Assembly: GCA_002269645.1 (NCBI GenBank) | Contig: NIVC01001641.1 | Span: 1-64,000 of the forward strand | Direction: 5' to 3' | DNA: 64,000 nt | Source: Macrostomum lignano | Lineage: Eukaryota | Part shown: piece after piece, positions 24,012 to 57,609 of the stretch | Numbering within the stretch: position 1 is the first letter of the stretch | Layout of the letters: every line of letters starts with the position of its first letter | Translations under genes and position numbers: made by a program | Notes under the pieces: model-generated | The model's database searches: none | Told to the model about the DNA's origin: nothing | Seen by the model: the letters and a program-made list of their open reading frames with translations, nothing else

Positions 24012-27000
24012 ATGCAGTCGTTTCTGACGCCGCTCGTTCTGCTTCTTCTGGTTGTTCATTTGGCAATTGGCCTGCAGGCGAAGCCCGGACAAGGTGACTT
24101 GGGCGATGCTCCAGGTAAGCCATGAGGAGCTCTTCTTAATTTGAATCTCTGCTTTTATAACGTAATAATTGTAAAAAGGAAAGATCCTTTCCACCCTGCA
24201 AGTCGGAGGCGAGGTACTGTCACCTGTGTCTGCGAGACCCAATTAGTTGTCAGAGGTATTGTCACCTGTGTCTGCGAGACCCAATTAATTGTCAGAGGTA
24301 CTGTCACCTGTTCCTGAGTGACCCTAAAAGGCAGGAATGTTCCCACCTGTGTATTTAATGACCCTGATTGTCAAGGGCACTGTCACCTGTGTATTTAATG
24401 ACCCGGATTGTCGGGGGTATTGTCATCTGTGTATTTAATAACCCTGATTGTCGGGGGTATTGTCACCTGTGTATTTAATAACCCTGATAGTCAAGGGCAC
24501 TGTCACCTGTGTATTTAATGACCCTGAATGTCAGGGGTATTGTCGCCTGTGTATTTATTGATCTTAAAAGTGGGGGTATTGTCACCTGTGTATTTTAGCT
24601 CGTATGACTCTGACTGCAAGTGGTTTTCTAAAACCCGCCCGCACCTCCTTTCCAGCAGGAGTCGCCGATCACAGAAAGCCCCCGCGCATCCTGGACTTCA
24701 AAGTCTACGGCCTGTACAAGTGGCTGAGCTGGTCGGCGCCGCTCAGGGAACTCACCGGGGAGCAGGTGGTGTCGGGGAATTTCTACCTCGAACTGTTGTA
24801 CAACGGAGAGGATCTGGGTTCGAAGCCCGACCCGGCTGGAAACGGTGAGTTAATGAACTCTTGTTAAAACTTCATTGGGCTTTGCTTAAATTGTCACCGA
24901 CTATAGTCACAGTGTCAATTGATTTCAGTGACAATTGACTGCCAGTGACAATTGACTGTCAGTGACAATTGACTGTCAGTGACAATTGACTGTCAGTGAC
25001 TATTGACTGCCAGTGACAATTGACTGCCAGTGACAATTGACTGTCAGTGACAATTGACTGTCAGTGACAATTGACTGCCAGTGACAATTGACTGCCAGTG
25101 ACAATTGACTGTCAGTGACAATTGACTGTCAGTGACAATTGAATGTCAGTAACATTCAAAGTTCATATTTTTGCTTTAAACTCGTCCTCACGCAGACCAG
25201 CTATCCATCAAACTGCCCGACCTCGGGTCCAACTTGCTGGATGTCACCGACGTGTTGATCCTGTTCAAAAGCGAACACCTCGGCAACAAGTCCCTGACTT
25301 GTTCGTTTCCGCTGGCTAGAATGGGAAAAAATCTGTGCAACTTCACCACTGTCAACAAGTACATTGCCTTGGTGGTTAGAGGTAAGATTCGAAAGTTTTA
25401 TGCCGAAGATTTTAAAACAATACTTTTCAAGCCTTTTGCAGCGTTCAGAGTGCCTTCCTCTATCAGTAATATTGATATTCCTATTGAACTTCAAATTGTT
25501 GACCTTTTTAAGTGCAATTTTTGCTCACTCTAAAGTGGCGCCAAGACGCCTTTATCTGCCTCGCTTATGATTTGGAATAAAGACTGAGGCTTGCATACCG
25601 AGCGGAATTTCGGGTGCTACTGTTAACGCACGTCACCGCATGGTAATATTAGTGAACGCTTAAAGAGGATGTGAACTCAAGAGTCAAAATGGAGCCCGAA
25701 ACATTGGGTCCCGATTTCTCTACGCCAAGTCTTTTCATTTGGAGCCAAACCCTCGTAGCTCCCGTTATGCCTAAAACCGACCACTTTAGTATTTGGGAAT
25801 CTCTATGGGGAGAAATGGGATAAATGGGGTTTTCATGTGAACTTAAAGCTCTATAGAACGGAGCCTGAAGCATTGGGTCTCGGTTTCTCTAAGCCAATCC
25901 CTTCATTTGGAGATTCAAATGCTTAAATGACGAGATGACCATGATAAACGCTCTTCTTAATACTTTTTTATGTTATCCCCCCACCCCAGCTCTCATTGTG
26001 TTTCCCCACCTTGATGGAGACGTAAATAACGTCAAAGGGTTTGTATCACACATTTTAGACAGACAATTTCTACCTCGACGAAGTGGACGTTAAGCCGACG
26101 TTTCGAGACGAAGGGTGGTAAACATCATTTTCGCACATTTATATCGTGAAATCCCCATTTCTCCCCATAGAGATCCCCAAATTCTAAAGTGGTCGGTTTT
26201 AGGCACGGCGGGAGCTATTTAGCTCCAAATGAATAGAGAAATCGGAACCAAATGTTTCGGGCTCCATTTTGACTCTTAAGTTCACATCCTCTTTCAATTT
26301 GCATCGCTTTGACTTTGCTTGGACAGAGGACAGAGGCTCGTCTGGTGGCCCGGAGAAACCGGATGAGCCGTGGGAAGTTCTCTGGCCGGCAAGCGTCGTC
26401 CAGGGGACGGGTCCAGGGGACGCGAGTCACTCCCGAAGTGGTGGAGCCGGTCTCGTTTGAACACCCGGCAGTGGCAGACGAAGTGCTTAACTTCCTCGTT
26501 CTCGAGGTTGCAAAAGGGGCAGAGTTTGCTCCGGCGGTCGCTTTGTGGAAATTGCCTGACAAAGCAACCGTGACCTGTGAAGGTCATAGTGAGAGCACGG
26601 GTATCCCTTCGATTTTTGGTTCAGAAGAATTTCCCGCAGCTTAGAAGAGGAGATTGGCGGCAGTTGGGGATTTCGTCCCGAATTTCATCACTATTTGATC
26701 CAACAATCAAGGCGCTGCATGCATTTTAACCAGAGCGAATCCGACTGCACAGCTGTCGCCAGTCCAGCAACCTGAGAGGTGCCGATGGTACATTCTCGTG
26801 CAGCCTGGCCTACGACGAAGAGTGCTCTGTATCAACTAGCCCGAATGTGTCCTTGAGCAGCTGCGCGATGACCAGTGCGAGTCATCGGCCCTGGTGGATG
26901 GCGCAGACTGACAGGAGCTTCCAGTTCGAGCGGATCGAGCTGCACTCGGCTGCCGAGTTCAACCAGTGGACTAAAAACTTCCAACTGTCCGTTGAGAATT

Positions 27001-29023
27001 CTATCTGCGTCAATGGGAAAAACGGAAACTTGTTCGTCAGGAAGTCGTTCAACTGCGAAGCTACCGGCAGCTGGGTCATGGTGACGGCGCTGGACAGCGA
27101 CGTCAGACTCACTATCTGCCAACTGGTGGCTCACGGATCTCCCGGAGGTGAGCAAAGTTTATGGTTATTGCTGAAATATGGCTCATGGGTGGGGTTTTGA
27201 GATGCCAATTGATGTCAGTGTCAATGTCTTTGACTTACTTGCGAGACTTGACTTAGCTTCAGGGGATTCCAGGCATCCGGATACAGCGAGGAGGTGTCGC
27301 CACCCATTCTGCTAAGCCCTGGCAACCACGGGCAGCTGGTGCTGCGGTGTCGCACAGGGAGATCTAGGGTGCCGGTGTCCGCAGCTCGGTCCCCCTCCGG
27401 AGAGCCCGGTAGTCCACAGGTAGCGGACGAGCTGGTAGAGGGTGTCGGGTCTGAAAACGTTAGAGAGGTCCGGGTTTGGGCCGAGTTAGGTGAGCCTGTC
27501 CTGAGTACTCCAAACTCCATGGCACTGCAGGATGTGGCGAAATTTCGAAACCGCAAGCCGACAGCGACGACGACAAGGACGACTCAACTGCCGGCAGCAA
27601 TGGCCAAGCGTGCCAGCGAACCCTGCGAAGCCACCTTGGCCAGGGCAGGGCGGCCTACCCGGGCGGTCTGAACTGCCAGTGGACTCTGGCGCCGCCGCAC
27701 CGGTCAGCCAAGCTGCTGCTCCAGTTCCCGGAGTTCAGCACGGCCGGGCCGCAGGACTATGTGGCCGTGTACGAGGGCGCGAGCGTTGGCGGCAAACTGC
27801 TGGGCAAATTCTACGGCAAGGCGGGCGGCAAAACGGCGCCACCAAGCTACAGCGAGCCGAGCGTCTTCGGCGCCAAGAACTACCTGATGTCTGGCAGCAC
27901 TAGCAACGCTGTGACGGTGCAGTTCGTCACAGCGCGAGTCGCCAACGGAAAGAAGCCGTTGCCTCGCAGTGCGGATAAGTACGGTGGATTTCTGATTAAG
28001 TTCACCATTGTTAAAGGTGAGTTGTTGTCTGCAAAAGACAGTTAAAAAATTGACTAAATTTGCCACACATCTGCTTTAAATTGTGTTACAGACGACGAAT
28101 ATCTCGACAATGGGAAGAGAAGCGACTTTAGTGTAAGACACGGTTTGAAACAAAATTAACAATTGTGTCAACTCGATTCGATGCAAATACTTTCGATGGA
28201 ACGTCTCCTCCACTGTAGGATCCACTTCGAAAGTGCAACCTGCCGTCCTACGCTGAGAAGCTCTACACTCTGTGCTATAATCGAGGCAGAATCAACCCCA
28301 TCTATCTCTATGGAAACAAAACTGGAGGTGAGAGAATGCAAAGTTGACTTCTGGGACAACATTGCCTCAATTTAGAAAAAAGACTCGTTTAGAATTAGGT
28401 GGAAACCTGCAAAGCAAGCTTAACTGATTCGAGATTAATGCGACTCACTGAAAACAAACAAAAGTTACTTGTCATGGAATAGGGTGTCTTCTTTAGGACA
28501 GTATTGATCAATTTAGATAACTGTACCTTCTTCCGATTAATTGGTGACTCATTCATTTTAAAGATGACTCATTGATTTTAAAGATGACTCATTGAGATTA
28601 AAAGTGAATCATTGGAATCAAAGGTGACTCGTTGAGATAAAAGGTGACTCATTCAAATCAAGGTAAGCAAGGTTACTAAGCAATGCTCTATCTCATGGTG
28701 CAGGTAAAATGCTGCAAGCCTACGTTTCAAGCAACGGTAAAATTCCGCTGCCACCAATCAACATTGAGCTGATGGGGGAGAAGCTGGGAGTCACTCTGTT
28801 CCGCGTCCCGGAGATCGAAGCGGACCTGACTGACGCAAAGGTGGGCAGCTGGTGCCGGGCCTACAAAAAGCCGGAGGTGCCGCCGAGGTACTTCAGAGAG
28901 TGTTGCTGCCGATACTGCTCTCTGAGGTACCTGTCCAGGTACTGCATGTGGGACTACAGCAGCACCAGCGATTGCGCGCTGACAACCAACAGGACTGGGC
29001 TGGTGTTTTCGCCACCGCACTGA
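24012..29023 (+). CDS. Secreted multidomain protein (~577 aa): signal peptide, FN3-like domain, insulin B-chain-like motif, F-type lectin (FTP/F5-8C-like) domain, CUB domain, insulin A-chain-like C-terminus
   Basis: Exons 24012-24114 (MQSFLTPLVLLLLVVHLAIGLQA), 24659-24844, 25196-25381, 26734-27147, 27531-28016, 28092-28130, 28704-29023; all phase-1 joins, total 1734 nt in frame. FTP: CRQSS...CAMT...PWWMAQ...LTICQLVAHG. CUB: CQRTL...YPGGLNCQWTL...DYVAVYEG...GFLIKF. The exon 6-7 junction is the least certain. Confidence 0.75.
24195..24600. repeat. ~40-bp degenerate minisatellite (gtattgtcacctgtgtatttaatgaccctg...) in intron 1
   Basis: About 10 diverging copies. Confidence 0.85.
24925..25150. 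repeat. 17-bp minisatellite (cagtgacaattgactgt) in intron 2
   Basis: About 13 copies, each with a CAATTG palindrome. Confidence 0.93.
25664..26292. mobile_element. Non-autonomous DNA transposon (MITE) with ~160-bp imperfect TIRs and a TTAA target site (Kolobok/piggyBac-type)
   Basis: Left agaggatgtgaactcaagagtcaaaatggagcccgaaacatt... is the reverse complement of right ...aatgtttcgggctccattttgactcttaagttcacatcctct; flanks TTAA (25660-63) and TTCA (26293-96). Confidence 0.8.
26300..26640 (-). mobile_element. Non-LTR retrotransposon ORF2 3' fragment (post-RT CCHC zinc knuckle)
   Basis: ORF 26294-26587: TGHGCF...CPFCNLENEEVKHFVCHCRVFKRDR is the typical LINE C-terminal C-X2-C-X8-H-X4-C motif. 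Confidence 0.75.
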
Positions 29024-29790
29024 GCGAACCGAAGGACAAACTAAAAGTACAATCTAATTGATTTTGTAGCAACTATATATGCACCCTAAACAACGACAAA
29101 AAAATAACAAAAAATTCTTCAATGCGAAAAAATTCTCACAAAGCGCGCTTCTTACTACTTGCCTCGATGTATCGTTTAGAAAAATGCTTAAAATATGACA
29201 ATATCTGCTGATTGCACCCTTTGATTCAGAATTCAATAGCTATAGAAATTGTACACAAATTTGCTACCAATCAATCACATTGTTTGAAATCAAAACATTC
29301 TTGCTTTGTCCCGCAAAAACACTCAAAAGCCCAAATTGTCTGAACAGACAAATTTTTCGTATGCTCTACTATTAGTAGCATCAGCCAGACTTTTCTTTTA
29401 TCTCGAACTTCATGCGTTTTAAGTCATAATCCAACACAAACACTATATAATTCATAAGCAGAATAAATATTAATAAATCTTTAGTATTATTAAACTCTTC
29501 TTACTGGCGATTATTTCATCTATTTTATGGAAGTCCGGTCTGGGGTGGTCTGGGCTTGAAGACAGATTGGGCAGCCAGAGTCTGGGCTGGTCCAATCACA
29601 GGGCACACAGGGGGGGGGGAGAAGATTGGCTTACAAGGGGTCGTAAGCCAATCAGTGCGAGCGCGAGAGAGTAAGAGGGTCAGAGAGATGTCAGCTGATT
29701 AGTCCGAACGCTCCGGTTTGCCAGACCAGAAAGATTGCCGAGACGATGGCAGACACCCCACCTAGGGAAAATGGGGTGTCAATGTTGGCC

Positions 29791-34462: not shown

Positions 34463-34993
34463 TACTTTGTAATTTATTTTACATCAGTCGCATGATTCGA
34501 TGGCTCAATCGATGGCGGTACATAAAATTAAATTGTATATAAAATTTAATGAGCCCACACATTTGATTTTAATCTCATGATCTATTTACAAATTTACTGT
34601 TTAAAACTTCGGTAACGTCTTGAGTAAACCACTAATTAGAGCCGTGTTTGGGCAATTTAAAACAAATAAATATTGAAGTGTTTATACTTTATTTAAATTT
34701 TTTCCGACGATTTCACCTGCTACATAGTATCAATAACAGACCGTTTAAGGAAGTATAAATTAATTTGAAAAGTCTCGAGCTGTACAAACGGTTCACTCTG
34801 TCCTCATGATGCTGAACAACAAATAAAAAACATAATGAGCAATGGAACAAGTCCCTCAATTAAGGCAGCATCTCTTCATCAAATTGTCCACCAAGGCAAG
34901 ACACGCAGTTGAAATTTAAAAAAATGATATAAATTTTGACAGTTATCGCAAAATATACATGTTGATACATGTTTGAAAAAACGAAGCAACGCT

Positions 34994-37900
34994 TTATGAA
35001 AAACAAGCTGCTAGCAGTACAGTGAGTGAAGGCAACAGCAGGGACAGCGCTAGGCTACATCTGCGTTGGGAAGCTTCTCGAGGCCAGATGACGTTGTTCG
35101 TTGTTGTTGTCAGAGTTGTTGGCGTCGTTATCGTCGGAGTGGTTGTCGTTGGAGTGGTTGTTGTTGGAGTGGTTGTTGTTGGAGTGGTTGTTGTTGGAGT
35201 GGTTGTTGTTGGAGTGGTTGTTGTGGGGGTGGTTGTTGTTGGAGTGGTCGTTGTTGGAGTGGTTTTTGTCGGAGCGAGCGTTGTTGGAGTGGTTGTTGTT
35301 GGAGTGGTTGTTGTTGGAGTGGTTGTTGTTGGAGTGGTCGTTGTTGGAGTGGTTTTTGTCGGAGCGAGCGTTGTTGGAGTGGTTGTTGTTGGCGTGGTTG
35401 TTGTTGGCGTGGTTGTTGTTGGCGTGGTTGTTGTTGGAGTGGTTGTTGTTGGAGTGGTTGTTGTTGGCGTGGTTGTTGTTGGAGTGGTTGTTGTTGGAGT
35501 GGTCGTTGTTGGAGTGGTTTTTGTCAGAGCGAGCGTTGTTGGAGTGGTTGTTGTAGGCGTGGTTGTTGTTGGCGTGGTTGTTGTTGGCGTGGTTGTTGTT
35601 GGCGTGGTTGTTGTTGGCGTGGTTGTTGTTGGCGTGGTTGTTGTTGGCGCGGTTGTTGTTGGCGTGGTTGTTGTTGGCGTGGTTGTTGTTGGCGCGGTTG
35701 TTGTTGGCGTGGTTGTTGTTGGCGTGGTTGTTGTTGTTGATGTCGAAGTCGCAGGAACTGCAATTAAAACAATTTTCAAACCCGCCGCTGTTGAGTAAAC
35801 TCGCGGCAGAGAACAAATATCCAGTCAATACACTAGCAGGTAAAAAACTCACAAGGCGGATGGTTGGTCATGGAGCCGCCCGTTCCAGCCTGCAGGCAGT
35901 TCGGCGGAGCGAAGCCCGGACTGCAGAAGCACTGGCCGCTCTGTGTGCACCAGCCGTTGCCATTGCAGTTCGGGCAGCGCGTGGTGTTGATGGCCACGCA
36001 CTGGGAGTCGACGCACATCTGGAAAATAGTTGCGAGTTGGGAATTGAAATATCAGAACTCAGTCAAGCCCTTCCCGCTGACCCCCCCCCCCCGAGAAAGG
36101 GCACGAAAATCGGTCCTGGGGCTCATGTGATTCACGCCTGAAATATTTCAGCCCCGAAGCAACCCGGCTAAGTGCGAATAATTTAATAAGTGCACTCTAT
36201 TAAATACCGGAGCACCCACCCGTCCGGTTCCGCATTCGGCGCCATTGGGAACGAGCCCAGGGTCCCGGTAGCCGGAGCTGCGCAAGTCCAGCTGCATAAA
36301 AGCGGCGATCACGTTAGTGGAGTTCACGCTGCCCTCGAACACCTTGGCGTCGGCGAGGTTGGCGCCTTGCCACACCGGAATTGGGTCGCCTGAGGCGATA
36401 TTTGACGTGCAATACAGCAATCCGCAGCGTTGGTTTCTGGGTGGACGGAGCAGTTTGAGTTGGTCATTTCACGGAGAAGTTGAATTAAGGATTAATAAAA
36501 TGGGATTTAGGATAGACGAATAGGATTAATAAATATAATATACCAATTGCGATCGATGATTCTGGCGTTTGGGATTGATGATTCTGGTGTTTGGGATTGA
36601 TGATTTTGGGGTTTAGGATTGATGACTCTGGGGTTTGGGATTGATGATTCTGGCGTTTGGGATTGATGATTCTGGGGTTTGGGATTGATGATTCTGGCGT
36701 TTGGGATTGATGATTCTGGGGTTTGGGATTGATGATTCTGGGGTTTGGGATTGATGATTCTGGGATTTGGGATTGATGATTCTGGGGTTTGGGATTGATG
36801 ATTCTGGGATTTGGGATTGATGATTCTGGGGTCTGGGATTGATGATTCTGGCGTTTGGGATTGATGATTCTGGGGTTTGGGATTGATGATTCTGGGGTTT
36901 GGGATTGATGATTCTGGGATTTGGGATTGATGATTCTGGGATTTGGGATTGATGATTCTGGGGTTTGGGATTGATGATTCTGGGATTTGGGATTGATGAT
37001 TCTGGGGTTTGGGATTGATGATTCTGGGGTTTGGGATTGATGATTCTGTGGTTTGGGATTGATGATTCTGGGGTTTGGGATTGATGATTCTGGGGTTTGG
37101 GATTGATGATTCTGGGGTTTGGGATTGATGATTCTGGGGTTTGGGATTGATGATTCTAGGGGTTTGGGATTGATGATTCTGTGGTTTAGGATGGATGATT
37201 TTGGGATTTTGAACTGATGAATTTGGGATTTGCCACCTCCCCATCTCGATCCCTAGCTCACTCGGGACTGCAGCCGGTGTAGTTGTACGCGAGCGGGCTG
37301 ATCCCGGTCATGCTGTAGTCGCAGTAGCCCAGCTGCGATGCCTGAGTGGTGGCCTCGGAATAAAAGGCCGGGGCGGCCCGAAAATCCGAGGCGTTGAACA
37401 TCACGGAGCAGCGGGTGTTGCGGTCCGAGCACCGGCCGTTGAAGCAGTAGGCCTTGAGGGTCAGTGAGTCAACTGCGGTTCTTGAGTCAAAGGCCCATGA
37501 TTCAGAGGGTCACAGATTTGTTTACTGATTAACCATAGGGTTAAGGAATGATTGAGTCAATGGGTCATTAGATCAACAGGCCAATGAGTCAATGGGTTAG
37601 TGGGTCAATGGGTCATTGGGTCAATAAGTCATTGGTTCAGTAAGTGATTGGGTCATTGGGTCAATAAGTAATTGGGTCAATAAGTCATCGGTTCATTTGG
37701 TCAATGGGTCATTGGGTCATTGGGTCAATGGTTAATTGGGTCATTGGATCATTTCGTCAATGGGTCAATGGGTCAGTGGGTCATTGGGTCATTGGGTCAT
37801 TGGTCAATGGGTCAATGGGTCAATGGGTCATTGGATAATTGGATCAGTGGGTCATTGGGTCAATAAGTCATTGGGTCAATGGGTCATTGGGTCATTGGGT

Positions 37901-53364: not shown

Positions 53365-56300
53365 TCACAGAGCCGCCAGTGCGGCATCGCAGAAGCTGTA
53401 CAGGAAGTCGTGCAGCCAGCGGCCCCGATCCTCGCACATGCCGGCCAGCCGGCTGTCAGGCGTCAGAACGTCGGCCAGTTCAACGCCGAGGCGGCCGCTG
53501 GCCAGCAGGCGGGCCAGACAGAGCCTGGCTAGCTCGGAGTCCCTGAACACGCTGGCAGCGGTTAGCAGGCGACTCAACGGCGACTCAACAGTGGATGAAG
53601 AAGACGCCGGAGATGCTGAGAAATAAACAAACGATGCCCGCATCAGCACCGCCTCGGCAGCCGACGGCAAGTCCAGCAGGAACCGGCGCCTGCAGGCGAC
53701 AAGTCGCAGATAGTCGGCGAGCCGACGGAACGGCCCCGACTGGAGGTGCAGACAGGCGGAGCCCGAGTTCGCGCAGCCGTAGGCCAGGTGCAGCACGGAC
53801 TCAACAGTAGGCGGGTCAACATCGCGCAGCTGGATCCTGGTCGAGCCGGACTCGGCGAAGCTGCCAGCCAGGAGGGCTCGGAAATAATCCGACCGGGCGG
53901 TGAGGGCGGCCCGGTGACAGGACAGGCCGCTGGGCAGCGGTGAGTCCGCATCACCGTCCAGCGATGACGGAAAAGTCAGCAACAGGTCGGCTGGCTCAGA
54001 GGCGATTCGAGCGCCGAACTGGCAGGTCGGGGAGCTCAGCTTGTCCTGTTGAATCTGGCGCTGCAAGCTGCCCCGCTGGAGTAGAAGAGTCCAGGCAATG
54101 TCGGCGGCGGAGCAGCTGGTGCTGCTGCTCAGGCGCAGGCTGGAGCTGACCACATCGGACAGTCGCTGGCCGGGGGGACCCAGCCGGCTCAGGCACAGGT
54201 GCAGCAGGCGCCTCAGGCCCAGCCCAGCCAGTTCAGCGTCTGGCGACTCGGCATTGTCAGCAGCGGCGTCTTCGGGTTCGTCGGATCGCCGCAGCAGACG
54301 GAATAGCCGGGCTACGAAGCCTGTGGCCCGGTGAGCTCGGCAGATTGTCGATGACTCAACCGTTGCTATGGTGACGGTGGGGTCAGTCCGATGGTCGCTC
54401 GGCCGGCCCGGCCTGAGCAGTAGACAGGGCAGGCTGAGGGCGCACAGGCGGGCGAGCCCGGGCCGCCGGCCAGAGGAGGCGAACCTGGACAGCGAGCGCA
54501 GGGTCTCCAGACCGAAGTGACTGCCAGCAGTGATGGCCGCTCTGTCCAGCACCTGCGGTTTTATTGCCAAATATCATATTATCTGTGCCATTTTTATCTT
54601 ATCTCTGGCTTTCCAATCTAATCTCTGGCCTTCCAATCCAATTTCTGACGTTGTTATCTAATCTCTAGCTGTCTCAAACAATCTATGCCATTCTTATTTA
54701 ATCTCTGGCCGACTCATCCTATGTCTGGCCGTCCCATCCAATCTCTGGCCGTCTCATCTAATCTCTGGCTGTCTTATCCAATCTCTGGCTGGCTCATCTG
54801 CCCTTCTTATCTAATCTCTGGCCGTCTAATCTAATCTCTGGCTTGCTAATCCAATCTCTGCTCTTCTTATCTAATATATGGCCATCCGATCCAATCTCTG
54901 GCCGTCCCGTCTCATCCAATCTCTAGCAGTCTCATTCAATCTCTGCCCTTCTTATCTTATTTCTGGCCGTCTCATCCAATCTCTGGCTGCCTCATCCAAT
55001 CTCTGGCTGTCTCATCCAATATCTGGCCGTCTCATTAATATATGGCTGTCTCATCCAATCTCGACTGCCCTTCTCATTCAATCTCTGCCCTTCTTATCTC
55101 TAATTTCTCTTCTGTCCTTCTCTCTTGACCTTGACCTCCAATTCTACAAGTAACCGAACTTGCTAACCCTCACCTGATCGAGCTCGTAGCAGCTGCCCGA
55201 GCACCTTGCGGACGCTGTCTCCGCCCTGAGGCTACCGCTAGTAGCGCCAGCAGCCCTGCAGTCGGGGTCGAACCGCCTGGCCAAGGCCAGCACGCATCCG
55301 CCAGAGATGAGCGGCTCCAGCGCGAATTGGCAGCCGGCCAGCTGCCTCATGAGCAGCCAGCAGCGCAGGTGAGGCCTGGCAATCAGGTAGTCAACAAGCA
55401 GGCGCAGCGTGGCCGCGGGTTCCAGCAATGCCGGCCGCAGGCGAGAGTCGCTGGCCAGCTGGGTCAGGCAATGCAGAGCCGCGCCTTCCACATCGCCGAG
55501 AGTCACCGGCTCGCCGTCGGGCTCAGCTGCTTCATCGGCCTCATCAACGCCAAGCGCCTCCTCTTCGGGCACCACCTCTGAGAATAGCGAGGCAGCGTCG
55601 TCGTCATAAAAGTCGTCGTCGTCATTGTCGTCCCTGACGACGCCGTGGAAGTCTTCAGGATCGTCAGCAAAATCATCGTCGCAGTCTGAGGAGGCTGACG
55701 AAGCCGCTGAAGAAGAATCACCGGACGAAGCGGCCGAGGAGGAGCCGGAAGACGCAGACGAGGCAGCGGGCGAATACGGCGGAGTCGGGTAGATGGGACT
55801 TGCACAGGTAGAGATTGCTGTTGTTGCTTTCGGCGCTGCTGCAGATTTTGTTGCAGATTTTGCAGCGGCAGTTTTTGAGCTGGCCAAGTTCGACGCCGAG
55901 GACAGACTCTCGGCCTCGGCTTGTGAGCTCGCTGCAGATGTCGAAGCAGCAGCTTCGTCGGTGAGGGTGGCGACCAGGGCTGAGGCGAGGCCCCAGCGGG
56001 CCAGCTCGGCCAGGCCCCGCCTGTCGTAGGCAAAGCAGGCGATGCACCGCATGGCCGTCAGGCGGACCACCTGCCAGCTGAAGCGACAGCGCAGCGCTAC
56101 GATCAGCACTCGATGACAGTCGGACTCGGCCGGGAGTCGAACTCGCGACCACGGATCGGCGCACAGCCGGTGATAGGCGGCCAGAGATCGGCGAACAAGT
56201 CGGCGCCGCCCGCGACGCTGCTGGCTGGCGGGCTGGTCGGCCTGGAGTTGCAGCAGCAGCAGGCGGGCCAGGCAGGCGGGGAAGCCGGCCCGAAGGCAGG

Positions 56301-57609
56301 CCTGGCGACCCGGGGCGGAGCAGCGGCACAGCGCGGCCAGGCAGTTGAAGGCCAGGCGGCTGTCATCGCCGCCCAGCAGGCCGGCAGAAGCGACGGTCAC
56401 CAGCGGGCTGCAGTCGAGATCGTCGGCCGTCAGGTGCTCAGGTGAGCAGGCTGGCAGCAGGTGGCCGAGCAGCCGGATAATAGCGGTGGTGATCACCGAG
56501 GCCGAGGACTTGGCGGGCTTTGACGCCTGCGCTGCTGACTGTTGCTGCCGCTTCGGAGGCTGGGACTGCGGCTGCTGGCCTGGAGATCTGCAGGGTGGGG
56601 AATCGTAAATGCATGGTTTGCATGAGGATCTGGGAGGCTGGCCCAGCAACTGAGGATCTGGGAGCCTAGCCCAGCAACTGAGGATCTGGGAGCCTGGCCC
56701 AGCAACTGGGGATCTGGGAGGCTGGCCCAGCAACTGGGGATCTGGGAGGCTGACCCAGCAACTGAGGATCTGGTAGCCTGGCCCAGCAACTGGGGATCTG
56801 GGAGGCTGGCCCAGAGACTGAGGATCTGGGAGGCTGGCCCAGCAACTGAGGATTTGGGAGGCTGGCCCAGCAACTGAGGATCTGGGAGGCTGGCCCAGAG
56901 ACTGAGGATCTGGGAGGCTGGTCCAGCAACTGGGGATCTGGGAGGCTAGCCCAGCAACTGGGGATCTGGGAGGCTGGCCCAGAGACTGAGGATCTGGGAG
57001 GCTGGCCCAGCAACTGAGGATCTGGGAGGCTGGCCCAGCAACTGGGGATCTGGGAGGCTGGCCCAGAGACTGAGGATCTGGGAGGCTGGCCCAGCAACTG
57101 AGGATTTGGGAGGCTGGCCCAGCAACTGAGGATTTGGGAGGCTGGCCCAGCAACTGAGGATTTGGGAGGCTGGCCCAGCAACTGAGGATCTGGAAGGCTG
57201 GCCCAGCAACTGAGGATCTGGAAGGCTGGCCCAGCAACTGAGGATCTGGAAGGCTGGCCCAGCAACTGAGGATCTGTGTGTCCGGGAGGCCTCACCTGGA
57301 GAGTCTGGCAGCCAGTTTATTCAGCAGGTGCGGACAGGCGCCAGCCGCCGCCAGCCGCTGCGGCCCGCCAGGCAGGCGAGTCACCAGGCGTAGACATCGA
57401 ACCGACAGATAGACTTCAACATCGTCGGTGTCTTCCGCATCAGCATTCGCCATGGCAACCAATTGTTCGCTGGCCTCCATAGCAACGGGCGGAGCGGCCG
57501 ATCGCAGCAGGTCGTGAATGCGTCGCTTAGCAACCAGAGAAGCGCCGGGGCCGCCGGAGGATTTGAGCAGGGAGTAGCTGGACAGCAGCGAGTCCAGCTG
57601 GCCGGCCAT
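53365..57609 (-). CDS. ARMC5: Armadillo repeat-containing protein 5 (ARM repeats plus C-terminal BTB), 971 aa, 3 exons
   Basis: Exons 57296-57609, 55174-56587, 53365-54552 in phase. FAYDRRGLAELARWGLASALVATL resembles ARMC5 [29 protein letters not shown] resembles CALTLPFIC; BTB HRAALTARSDYFRALLAGSFAES. Confidence 0.85.
54600..55110. repeat. Degenerate ~20-bp repeat (atccaatctctggccgtctc) in ARMC5 intron 2
   Basis: Irregular tandem copies. Confidence 0.85.
56625..57275. repeat. ~29-30-bp minisatellite (ggatctgggaggctggcccagcaactga) in ARMC5 intron 1
   Basis: About 22 copies; extends ORF 55144-57237 artificially. Confidence 0.94.

Follow-up and report, generated by a model that had tools for sequence, protein, structure and literature searches.

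The stretch of DNA analysed here, referred to as the window, comprises positions 1 to 64,000 of contig NIVC01001641.1 from Macrostomum lignano (assembly GCA_002269645.1; contig C1641 in what follows). Positions 24012-29023 of its forward strand are occupied by a single gene of eight exons, in which all introns are bounded by GT-AG and all junctions are in phase. The layout of the product is that of a signal peptide, a β-rich domain, an F-type-lectin-like domain, an acidic linker, a CUB domain, a short linker and a C-terminal module in which segments resembling the B chain, the C-region and the A chain of insulin follow one another (B-C-A). A preliminary description of this DNA had already proposed an insulin-like module, a lectin domain and a CUB domain in one secreted protein, a combination that is retained here; its further proposal that the lectin and CUB domains form the C-region of the precursor is not. 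When the acceptor at 24659 is used for exon 2, the product is letter-for-letter identical to GenBank PAA65528.1 (BOX15_Mlig028076g2, Mlig028076.g2; 614 amino acids). The exon 2 acceptor has the NAGNAG form (cagCAG), and the alternative site at 24656 gives the length and the exon structure of the 615-residue form listed in UniProt and WormBase (A0A1I8J8X4), which derives from a C1640-type gene copy and is 99% identical to the window protein. The 614- and 615-residue forms are thus accounted for by this acceptor. Both protein entries are publicly named merely as 'hypothetical' or 'CUB domain-containing protein'. The gene and its expression in the testis are already public; the reading of its C-terminus is new.

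Exon 1 (24012-24114) carries the start codon and a hydrophobic, signal-peptide-like start, MQSFLTPLVLLLLVVHLAIGLQA (24012-24080), which had been recognised before and constitutes the sole confident helix of the AlphaFold2 model; its donor is in phase 1. The first half of the β-rich N-terminal domain is encoded by exon 2 (24659-24844) and the second half by exon 3 (25196-25381), which contains CSFPLARMGKNLC (25300-25338), read here as a disulfide pair of that domain. Exon 4 (26734-27147) corresponds to the F-type-lectin-like (FTP) domain, and exon 5 (27531-28016) to the acidic linker (27533-27610) followed by the CUB domain (27611-28015). The 41-nt exon 6 (28092-28132) encodes the short linker DDEYLDNGKRSDFS with a dibasic KR at 28115-28120 (residues 467-468). 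The module itself is encoded by the last two exons: exon 7 (28219-28327) contains the B-chain-like segment DPLRKCNLPSYAEKLYTLCYNRGRINPIYLYGNKTG with a C-X12-C pair at 28234-28275 and ends in a phase-1 donor, and exon 8 (28704-29023) comprises the long C-region, an extra cysteine (28853-28855), the A-chain-like sequence CCCRYCSLRYLSRYC (28901-28945), a tail and the stop codon (29021-29023). Introns 5 and 6 are short (75 and 86 nt). Exon 7, which has strong splice sites and is present in the public gene models, had been overlooked in the preliminary description, where the last exon was joined through a weak donor or a 19-nt micro-exon. Both devices become unnecessary, because exon 7 makes all junctions canonical and in phase; the putative micro-exon lies inside a 20-bp tandem array of intron 7.

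A cluster of AATAAA/ATTAAA poly(A) signals at 29462-29494 (forward strand) implies a 3' untranslated region (UTR) of about 470 nt, and the published transcript length of 2423 nt is compatible with the 1845-nt coding sequence of all eight exons plus UTRs extending to this cluster. The GenBank models of this assembly were built from RNA-seq data assembled along the genome, with cuts made where spliced-leader or poly(A) evidence was present (PMC5730564). The RNA-seq-based model of this gene connects the last exon to those upstream, as had been supposed. The primers used for in situ hybridisation (ISH) of transcript RNA815_3228 map to exon 4 (27022) and exon 6 (28106-28125; reverse primer), and the product predicted under the eight-exon splicing, 646 nt, agrees to the nucleotide with the entry in Table S11 (PMC7336406). 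Published data show that this transcript of Mlig028076.g2 is expressed in the testis. Table S6 of the same work assigns the gene to the positional class Testis and to germline_FACS, with an ISH pattern of 'testes' for probe RNA815_3228 (PMC7336406), and Arbore et al. 2015 list RNA815_3228 as a testis-region candidate with a log2 fold change of 4.50, for which ISH was performed (PMC4490696).

The N-terminal domain (residues 35-159) has no match to any Pfam family at E values up to 10, fn3 included, so that its earlier designation as FN3-like was dropped; its β-strands are predicted by AlphaFold2 at low confidence. The CUB domain is assigned by Pfam PF00431 with 25.6 bits over residues 338-396 (cut-off 21.4), in agreement with the preliminary description; of the two cysteine pairs that are usual in such domains it has just the first. 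The segment from residue 160 to 297 is one member of a family of which M. lignano has at least 117 single-exon copies. A profile of nine members of this family, the window domain included, matches F-type lectins of solved structure, among them FBP32 (3CQO; E 1.7e-22), 4GWI, 2J22 and eel agglutinin (1K12; E 2.3e-6); Sm-hPAF and a fucolectin-related protein are also named among these matches. The window sequence alone reaches 13.6 bits, below the PF22633 cut-off of 27.8. Because the family profile matches solved F-type lectins, the FTP assignment made previously is right at the level of the fold, and as judged from the sequence the region is an F-type-lectin-like domain at fold and family level. 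The positions of the histidine and two arginines that form the fucose-binding motif of F-type lectins, as described for eel agglutinin, are occupied by Met, Ser and Trp in the window protein and by Gln, Ser and Trp in the paralogue described below. Many copies of this family are closely clustered in tandem, at intervals of about 1-2 kb (C2473, C2334, C2722, C34, C3074 and others), and the family represents a large lineage-specific expansion.

The C-terminal module spans about 140 residues and is made up of a B-like helix carrying C-X12-C, a C-region of 67 residues, an A-like part and a tail of 25 residues, which holds the ninth cysteine of the module. The A-like motif RECCCRYCSLRYLSRYC in the last exon reads CC-X3-C-X8-C, as originally noted, and this pattern is rare: it occurs just three times among the approximately 128,000 residues of the six-frame translation of the window, one of the three being in a simple repeat. 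With its neighbouring cysteines, the A-like part has the form C-X15-CCC-X2-C-X8-C. Schistosome insulin-like peptides (ILPs) have been described with the A-chain signature CCC-X2-C-X8-C (PMC5391603). We found the same signature in the M. lignano ILPs ILPa and ILPa2, in the window protein and in its paralogue; a second occurrence in the window, at 35102, was rejected as it lies inside a tandem repeat of the GGTTGTTGTTGGAGTG type. Canonical ILP genes of M. lignano were located with Pfam Insulin on contigs C1195/C1935, C1059/C225/C1097 and C2227/C2226, at least three types in all. ILPa (C1195, with a further A exon on C1935) has CCC-X2-C-X8-C and ILPb has CC-X-C-X2-C-X8-C, and both carry an extra cysteine 10-14 residues upstream of the A motif. 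The ILP of the C1059 group has a long C-region of SAHPSLHHQCSPQPPSSVLTPASII repeats, whose copy number varies between gene copies.

The B-like segment CNLPSYAEKLYTLCYNRG of exon 7 lies directly upstream of the A exon. Its EKLYTLCYNRG resembles RKLYEVCKDRG of a canonical M. lignano ILP and EALYLVCGERG of human insulin. In BLASTP comparisons of the module, the A chains align with ILPa (E 3e-4), and ILPb gives collinear matches to A (E 0.009) and B (E 0.039). A profile of the module (window protein, sister copy and paralogue) was then aligned by hhalign, on B+A constructs cut by hand, to one built from three canonical ILPs, and gave a probability of 92% (E 6.4e-7, score 37.1) over all cysteines. 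This score was reached by none of 200 column shuffles (mean 10.6, maximum 23.2) and by none of 200 shuffles in which the cysteines were held fixed (mean 19.8, maximum 33.9); residues other than cysteine therefore contribute to the similarity. When all 1904 open reading frames (ORFs) of the window were scored with a hidden Markov model (HMM) of canonical ILPs, the exon-8 ORF ranked first with E 0.0017, the runner-up having E 0.34. Similarity to bona fide members of the insulin superfamily is significant by hhalign, BLASTP and HMM alike. Among the nine PDB matches of the module profile at E < 10, six are A domains of insulin-like growth factors (IGF-I or IGF-II), each of them weak (E 0.5-0.8). 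Since the B-like exon 7 stands beside the A exon, all of B, C and A comes after the lectin-like and CUB domains in the protein, and these therefore constitute an N-terminal extension of the module and not its C-region. The phase-1 intron within the C-region, which recalls the conserved phase-1 intron of human INS (c.187/188), was considered as evidence and given little weight, because in ILPb and ILPc a single ORF covers B, C and A, and the corresponding junction of ILPa is ambiguous.

Comparisons across the 764-Mb M. lignano assembly revealed three near-identical copies of the gene (C1641, C1776 and C1640). Relative to the C1640 copy, divergence is 1.0% in exons and about 3.5%, plus indels, in introns. 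A group of paralogues on C1813, C819 and C816 is 33% identical overall to the window protein. In the paralogue (C1813:88279-97546) two exons for the N-terminal domain are followed by those for the lectin-like, CUB, B-like and A-like parts, in the order seen in the window gene, with an open frame and the modelled junctions in phase. All nine cysteines of the module are kept, C-X12-C included, and the A-like motif reads CCCGSCSRLFFIVQC. Upstream of the paralogue (C1813:84400-88160) two WSC domains, a C-type lectin and a galactose-binding-like domain were assigned by eye, and some 60 bp from the start of the paralogue CUB exon recur at C1813:88100-88160.

Several observations weigh against placing the module in the insulin family. 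Pfam Insulin (PF00049), the test proposed in the preliminary description, gives 8.5-11.8 bits, confined to the A part and below the cut-off of 23, and gives no match to the paralogue; ILPa and ILPb, run as controls, score 30.4 and 28.3 bits. The B-like cysteines are spaced by 12 residues instead of 11, and the glycine following the first of them is replaced, the pair being Cys-Asn in the window protein and Cys-Ser in the paralogue; deletion of one B residue to force C-X11-C gained no Pfam B-chain match. The exon-7 ORF alone is non-significant against the canonical ILP HMM (E 3.6). The protein is not a small precursor in which a signal peptide directly precedes B, C and A, as about 450 residues of other domains separate the signal peptide from the B-like segment, and the number of cysteines in the module, nine, is odd. 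AlphaFold2 returns a mean predicted local distance difference test (pLDDT) score of 34 for the full-length protein from a single sequence and of 37 for the module from a nine-row alignment of paralogue and canonical ILP exons; Foldseek of the low-confidence module model against the PDB yielded noise only and no match. No ILP relative was found by phmmer of the module against 1.84 billion representatives. Word-indexed protein searches with the window protein, the paralogue and the paralogue padded by upstream exons found no orthologue and no annotated paralogue, an exact-match look-up for encoding contigs came back empty, and no transcript or annotation support for the paralogue turned up in protein searches. 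In the paralogue the CUB exon can be joined to the B exon in two ways that preserve the frame. A filtered scan for a mini-exon resembling exon 6 gave only an 11-nt candidate with a weak donor; with a 20-nt candidate seen by eye in the paralogue intron (about C1813:96423-96442, acceptor ttgcag, donor gtaagc), both solutions are left standing. The KR and RYFR sites are not conserved either, so that the paralogues have no processing site in common. Because the evidence for and the evidence against both stand, the module is described here as a divergent insulin-like domain, joined in one protein to lectin-like and CUB modules, and not as a demonstrated member of the insulin family.

The low Pfam scores, the B spacing and missing glycine at the B8 position, the poor score of exon 7, the low-confidence AlphaFold2 models, the empty Foldseek comparison and the outcome of the phmmer search all count in favour of an unrelated or convergent cysteine-rich domain, one that shares the CC(C)-X-C-X8-C spacing and has neither the fold nor the ancestry of insulin. 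We consider this unlikely, as the similarity to ILPs exceeds all 200 shuffles with fixed cysteines, the B and A matches are collinear, and the extra upstream cysteine and the CCC are common to canonical flatworm ILPs; the dominance of IGF A domains among the weak PDB matches and the helices that AlphaFold2 predicts, at low confidence, at the B, A1 and A2 positions point the same way. A classical prohormone deserves somewhat more credence, and we regard it as possible though doubtful. Its lectin-like and CUB domains would be a large pro-region, and cleavage at KR (467-468), perhaps also at KK, would free an insulin- or IGF-like hormone for an insulin receptor of the male germ line. The KR precedes the first B cysteine by ten residues and is encoded in an exon of 41 nt that is kept in all three near-identical copies; a KK is present in the C-region of the window protein and an RRKR in that of the paralogue; the gene is expressed in the testis; and tyrosines occupy the B16-like and A19-like positions of the window protein, as they do in human insulin. 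The KR linker exon is, however, missing from the paralogue, the basic sites are not conserved in position, and the RYFR of the window protein is RYFS in the sister copies. The dibasic and RYFR sites pointed out in the preliminary description thus exist in the window protein but are not conserved between it and the paralogue.

Two further arrangements can be set against the single fused gene. In M. lignano some 30% of genes are trans-spliced, and the spliced leader carries an ATG at its end (PMC8629364). A lectin-CUB gene ending after exon 6 could accordingly be followed by an ILP cistron starting at exon 7: the acceptor of exon 7 is in phase 0, an ATG joined to GAT CCA... would read M-DPLRKC... 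in frame, and a transcript left unspliced at the exon 6 donor would reach a stop codon after seven codons. The product would nevertheless have no signal peptide, exon 7 having no ATG and exons 7 and 8 no signal peptide of their own, and would not be secreted, yet it requires disulfide formation; the RNA-seq-based GenBank model, cut at spliced-leader evidence, keeps the exons joined, the 2423-nt transcript fits a fused mRNA, and order and frame are kept in the paralogue. Such a pair of genes is in our estimation highly improbable. The topology of the preliminary description, in which exon 3 supplies the B chain, the last exon the A chain and the intervening lectin and CUB domains the C-region, is scarcely tenable at all. 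The C-X11-C motif TCSFPLARMGKNLC is indeed present at 25300-25338, but C-X11-C occurs 204 times in the six frames of the window, the equivalent pair of the paralogue is spaced by ten residues that are dissimilar, the motif falls within the domain predicted (at low confidence) to be β-rich, and a much better B-like segment exists in exon 7 beside the A exon. The exon-3 cysteine pair would fit a structural disulfide of the N-terminal domain.

The phmmer search of the module had, besides the protein itself, two long repeat proteins as matches, in which weak repeats are summed over the C-region, and these were judged spurious. The C-region GGKMLQAYVSSNGKIPLPP (module residues about 39-96; 28320-28327 and 28704-28870) matched an LPXTG/MucBP-like protein of Gram-positive bacteria in eight stretches (E 2e-10), and the second match is a eukaryotic repeat protein; both are probably chance matches arising from the summation of repeats. 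β-strands are predicted in the C-region by AlphaFold2 at low confidence.

The reading we favour, and consider moderately probable, is that of a secreted, testis-expressed lectin-like and CUB protein of 614 residues that bears a C-terminal divergent insulin-like module, originated by the fusion of an ILP gene and presents a single-chain fold on a scaffold. An ILP gene that had lost its own signal-peptide exon would have become attached behind a lectin-CUB gene, and a later duplication would have given rise to the 33%-identical paralogue. The protein would enter the secretory pathway in spermatids, where the module may adopt an IGF-like insulin fold in one chain, held by four disulfides. The extra cysteine upstream would pair with the third cysteine of the CCC, as we also suppose for canonical flatworm ILPs, and the ninth cysteine would perhaps pair with Cys298, located between the lectin-like and CUB domains. 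By binding glycan or protein partners, the lectin-like and CUB scaffold could localise the insulin-like domain at its C-terminus. In the clade of the window gene only, a prohormone convertase acting at KR467-468 could free a peptide of about 146 residues. As no processing site is conserved between the paralogues, we lean towards a module that acts while attached to the scaffold; on a rough estimate, and provided that the module is real, attachment has a slight edge over release. Taken one step further, the protein might be a 'tethered insulin', that is, a functional insulin- or IGF-like ligand on a lectin-like and CUB scaffold, travelling on or with sperm or freed at KR and acting, in the male germ line or in the mating partner, on signalling through the insulin receptor, in the manner of an allohormone-like ejaculate factor. 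We hold this bolder proposal to be quite unlikely; if true, it would be the first insulin-superfamily ligand within a multidomain protein of the adhesion type.

A comparison with flatworm ILPs (SjILP/SmILP and the M. lignano ILPs on C1195/C1935 and C1059/C225/C1097) reveals that the module shares with them CCC-X2-C-X8-C, an extra cysteine 10-15 residues upstream, a B helix ending in ...LY..C..RG and a long C-region. By contrast, these ILPs are small precursors of about 120-190 residues with the signal peptide directly before B, C-X11-C and Cys-Gly, and of the three M. lignano types that were run against Pfam Insulin, ILPa and ILPb pass, whereas the window module fails. The latter follows about 470 residues of other domains and has C-X12-C with Cys-Asn and a ninth cysteine. 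IGF-I and IGF-II resemble the module in their single-chain B-C-A arrangement, in a C-terminal extension and in having no conserved dibasic processing of the C-region, and they are the best PDB sequence matches of the module profile, though only at E 0.5-0.8 and through the A domain alone. They differ in their 12-residue C-domain and in having no N-terminal lectin or CUB modules. With F-type lectins (1K12, 3CQO) the window protein has the FTP fold in common at family level; it lacks the fucose-binding His/Arg/Arg, and its domain is fused to a CUB domain and an insulin-like module.

Oyster sperm bindin is a sperm protein of F-lectin repeats and, like the product of the window gene, is made in the male germ line. 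Spermadhesins, which come from accessory glands, consist of a single CUB domain; as here, the CUB domain is part of a secreted male-reproductive protein, but in the window protein it is one of five modules and retains the first cysteine pair only. To our knowledge, insulin-superfamily ligands are small stand-alone precursors composed of a signal peptide, B, C and A. A limited literature search found no description of a protein that combines an insulin-like module with lectin or CUB domains, and no paper noting the insulin-like part of Mlig028076.g2. The long retention of such a module, in paralogues that are 33% identical, would mean that larger extracellular proteins can take up the insulin fold as one of their modules. 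The gene is testis-specific in a hermaphrodite that serves as a model for sexual selection and germ-line stem cells, and is thus a candidate link between insulin-like signalling and sperm biology; in planarians, insulin signalling has reportedly been tied to spermatogenesis by Miller and Newmark in 2012.

Introns 1, 2 and 7 of the gene consist mostly of tandem repeats (24211-24595, 24910-25154 and 28543-28653), with units of 40/120 bp, of 17 bp in 14.5 copies and of 20 bp in 5.6 copies. Intron 3 contains two nested pairs of inverted repeats (25662-25819 and 26154-26294) of 61 and 64 nt that are 92-95% complementary and resemble foldback elements or miniature inverted-repeat transposable elements (MITEs). 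On the reverse strand, positions 26294-26620 hold an ORF of 108 residues with a CPFC...HFVCHC Cys/His motif, which has no Pfam match and is possibly the remnant of a retroelement. Elsewhere in the window, the region 34977-36141 is a tandem repeat of the GGTTGTTGTTGGAGTG type, open in several frames and with a strong GC skew. Long ORFs on the reverse strand at 53368-57291 encode a BTB/POZ domain (E 1.2e-9) and give a weak match to armadillo repeats of the ARMC5 type, and probably represent an ARMC5-like neighbouring gene.

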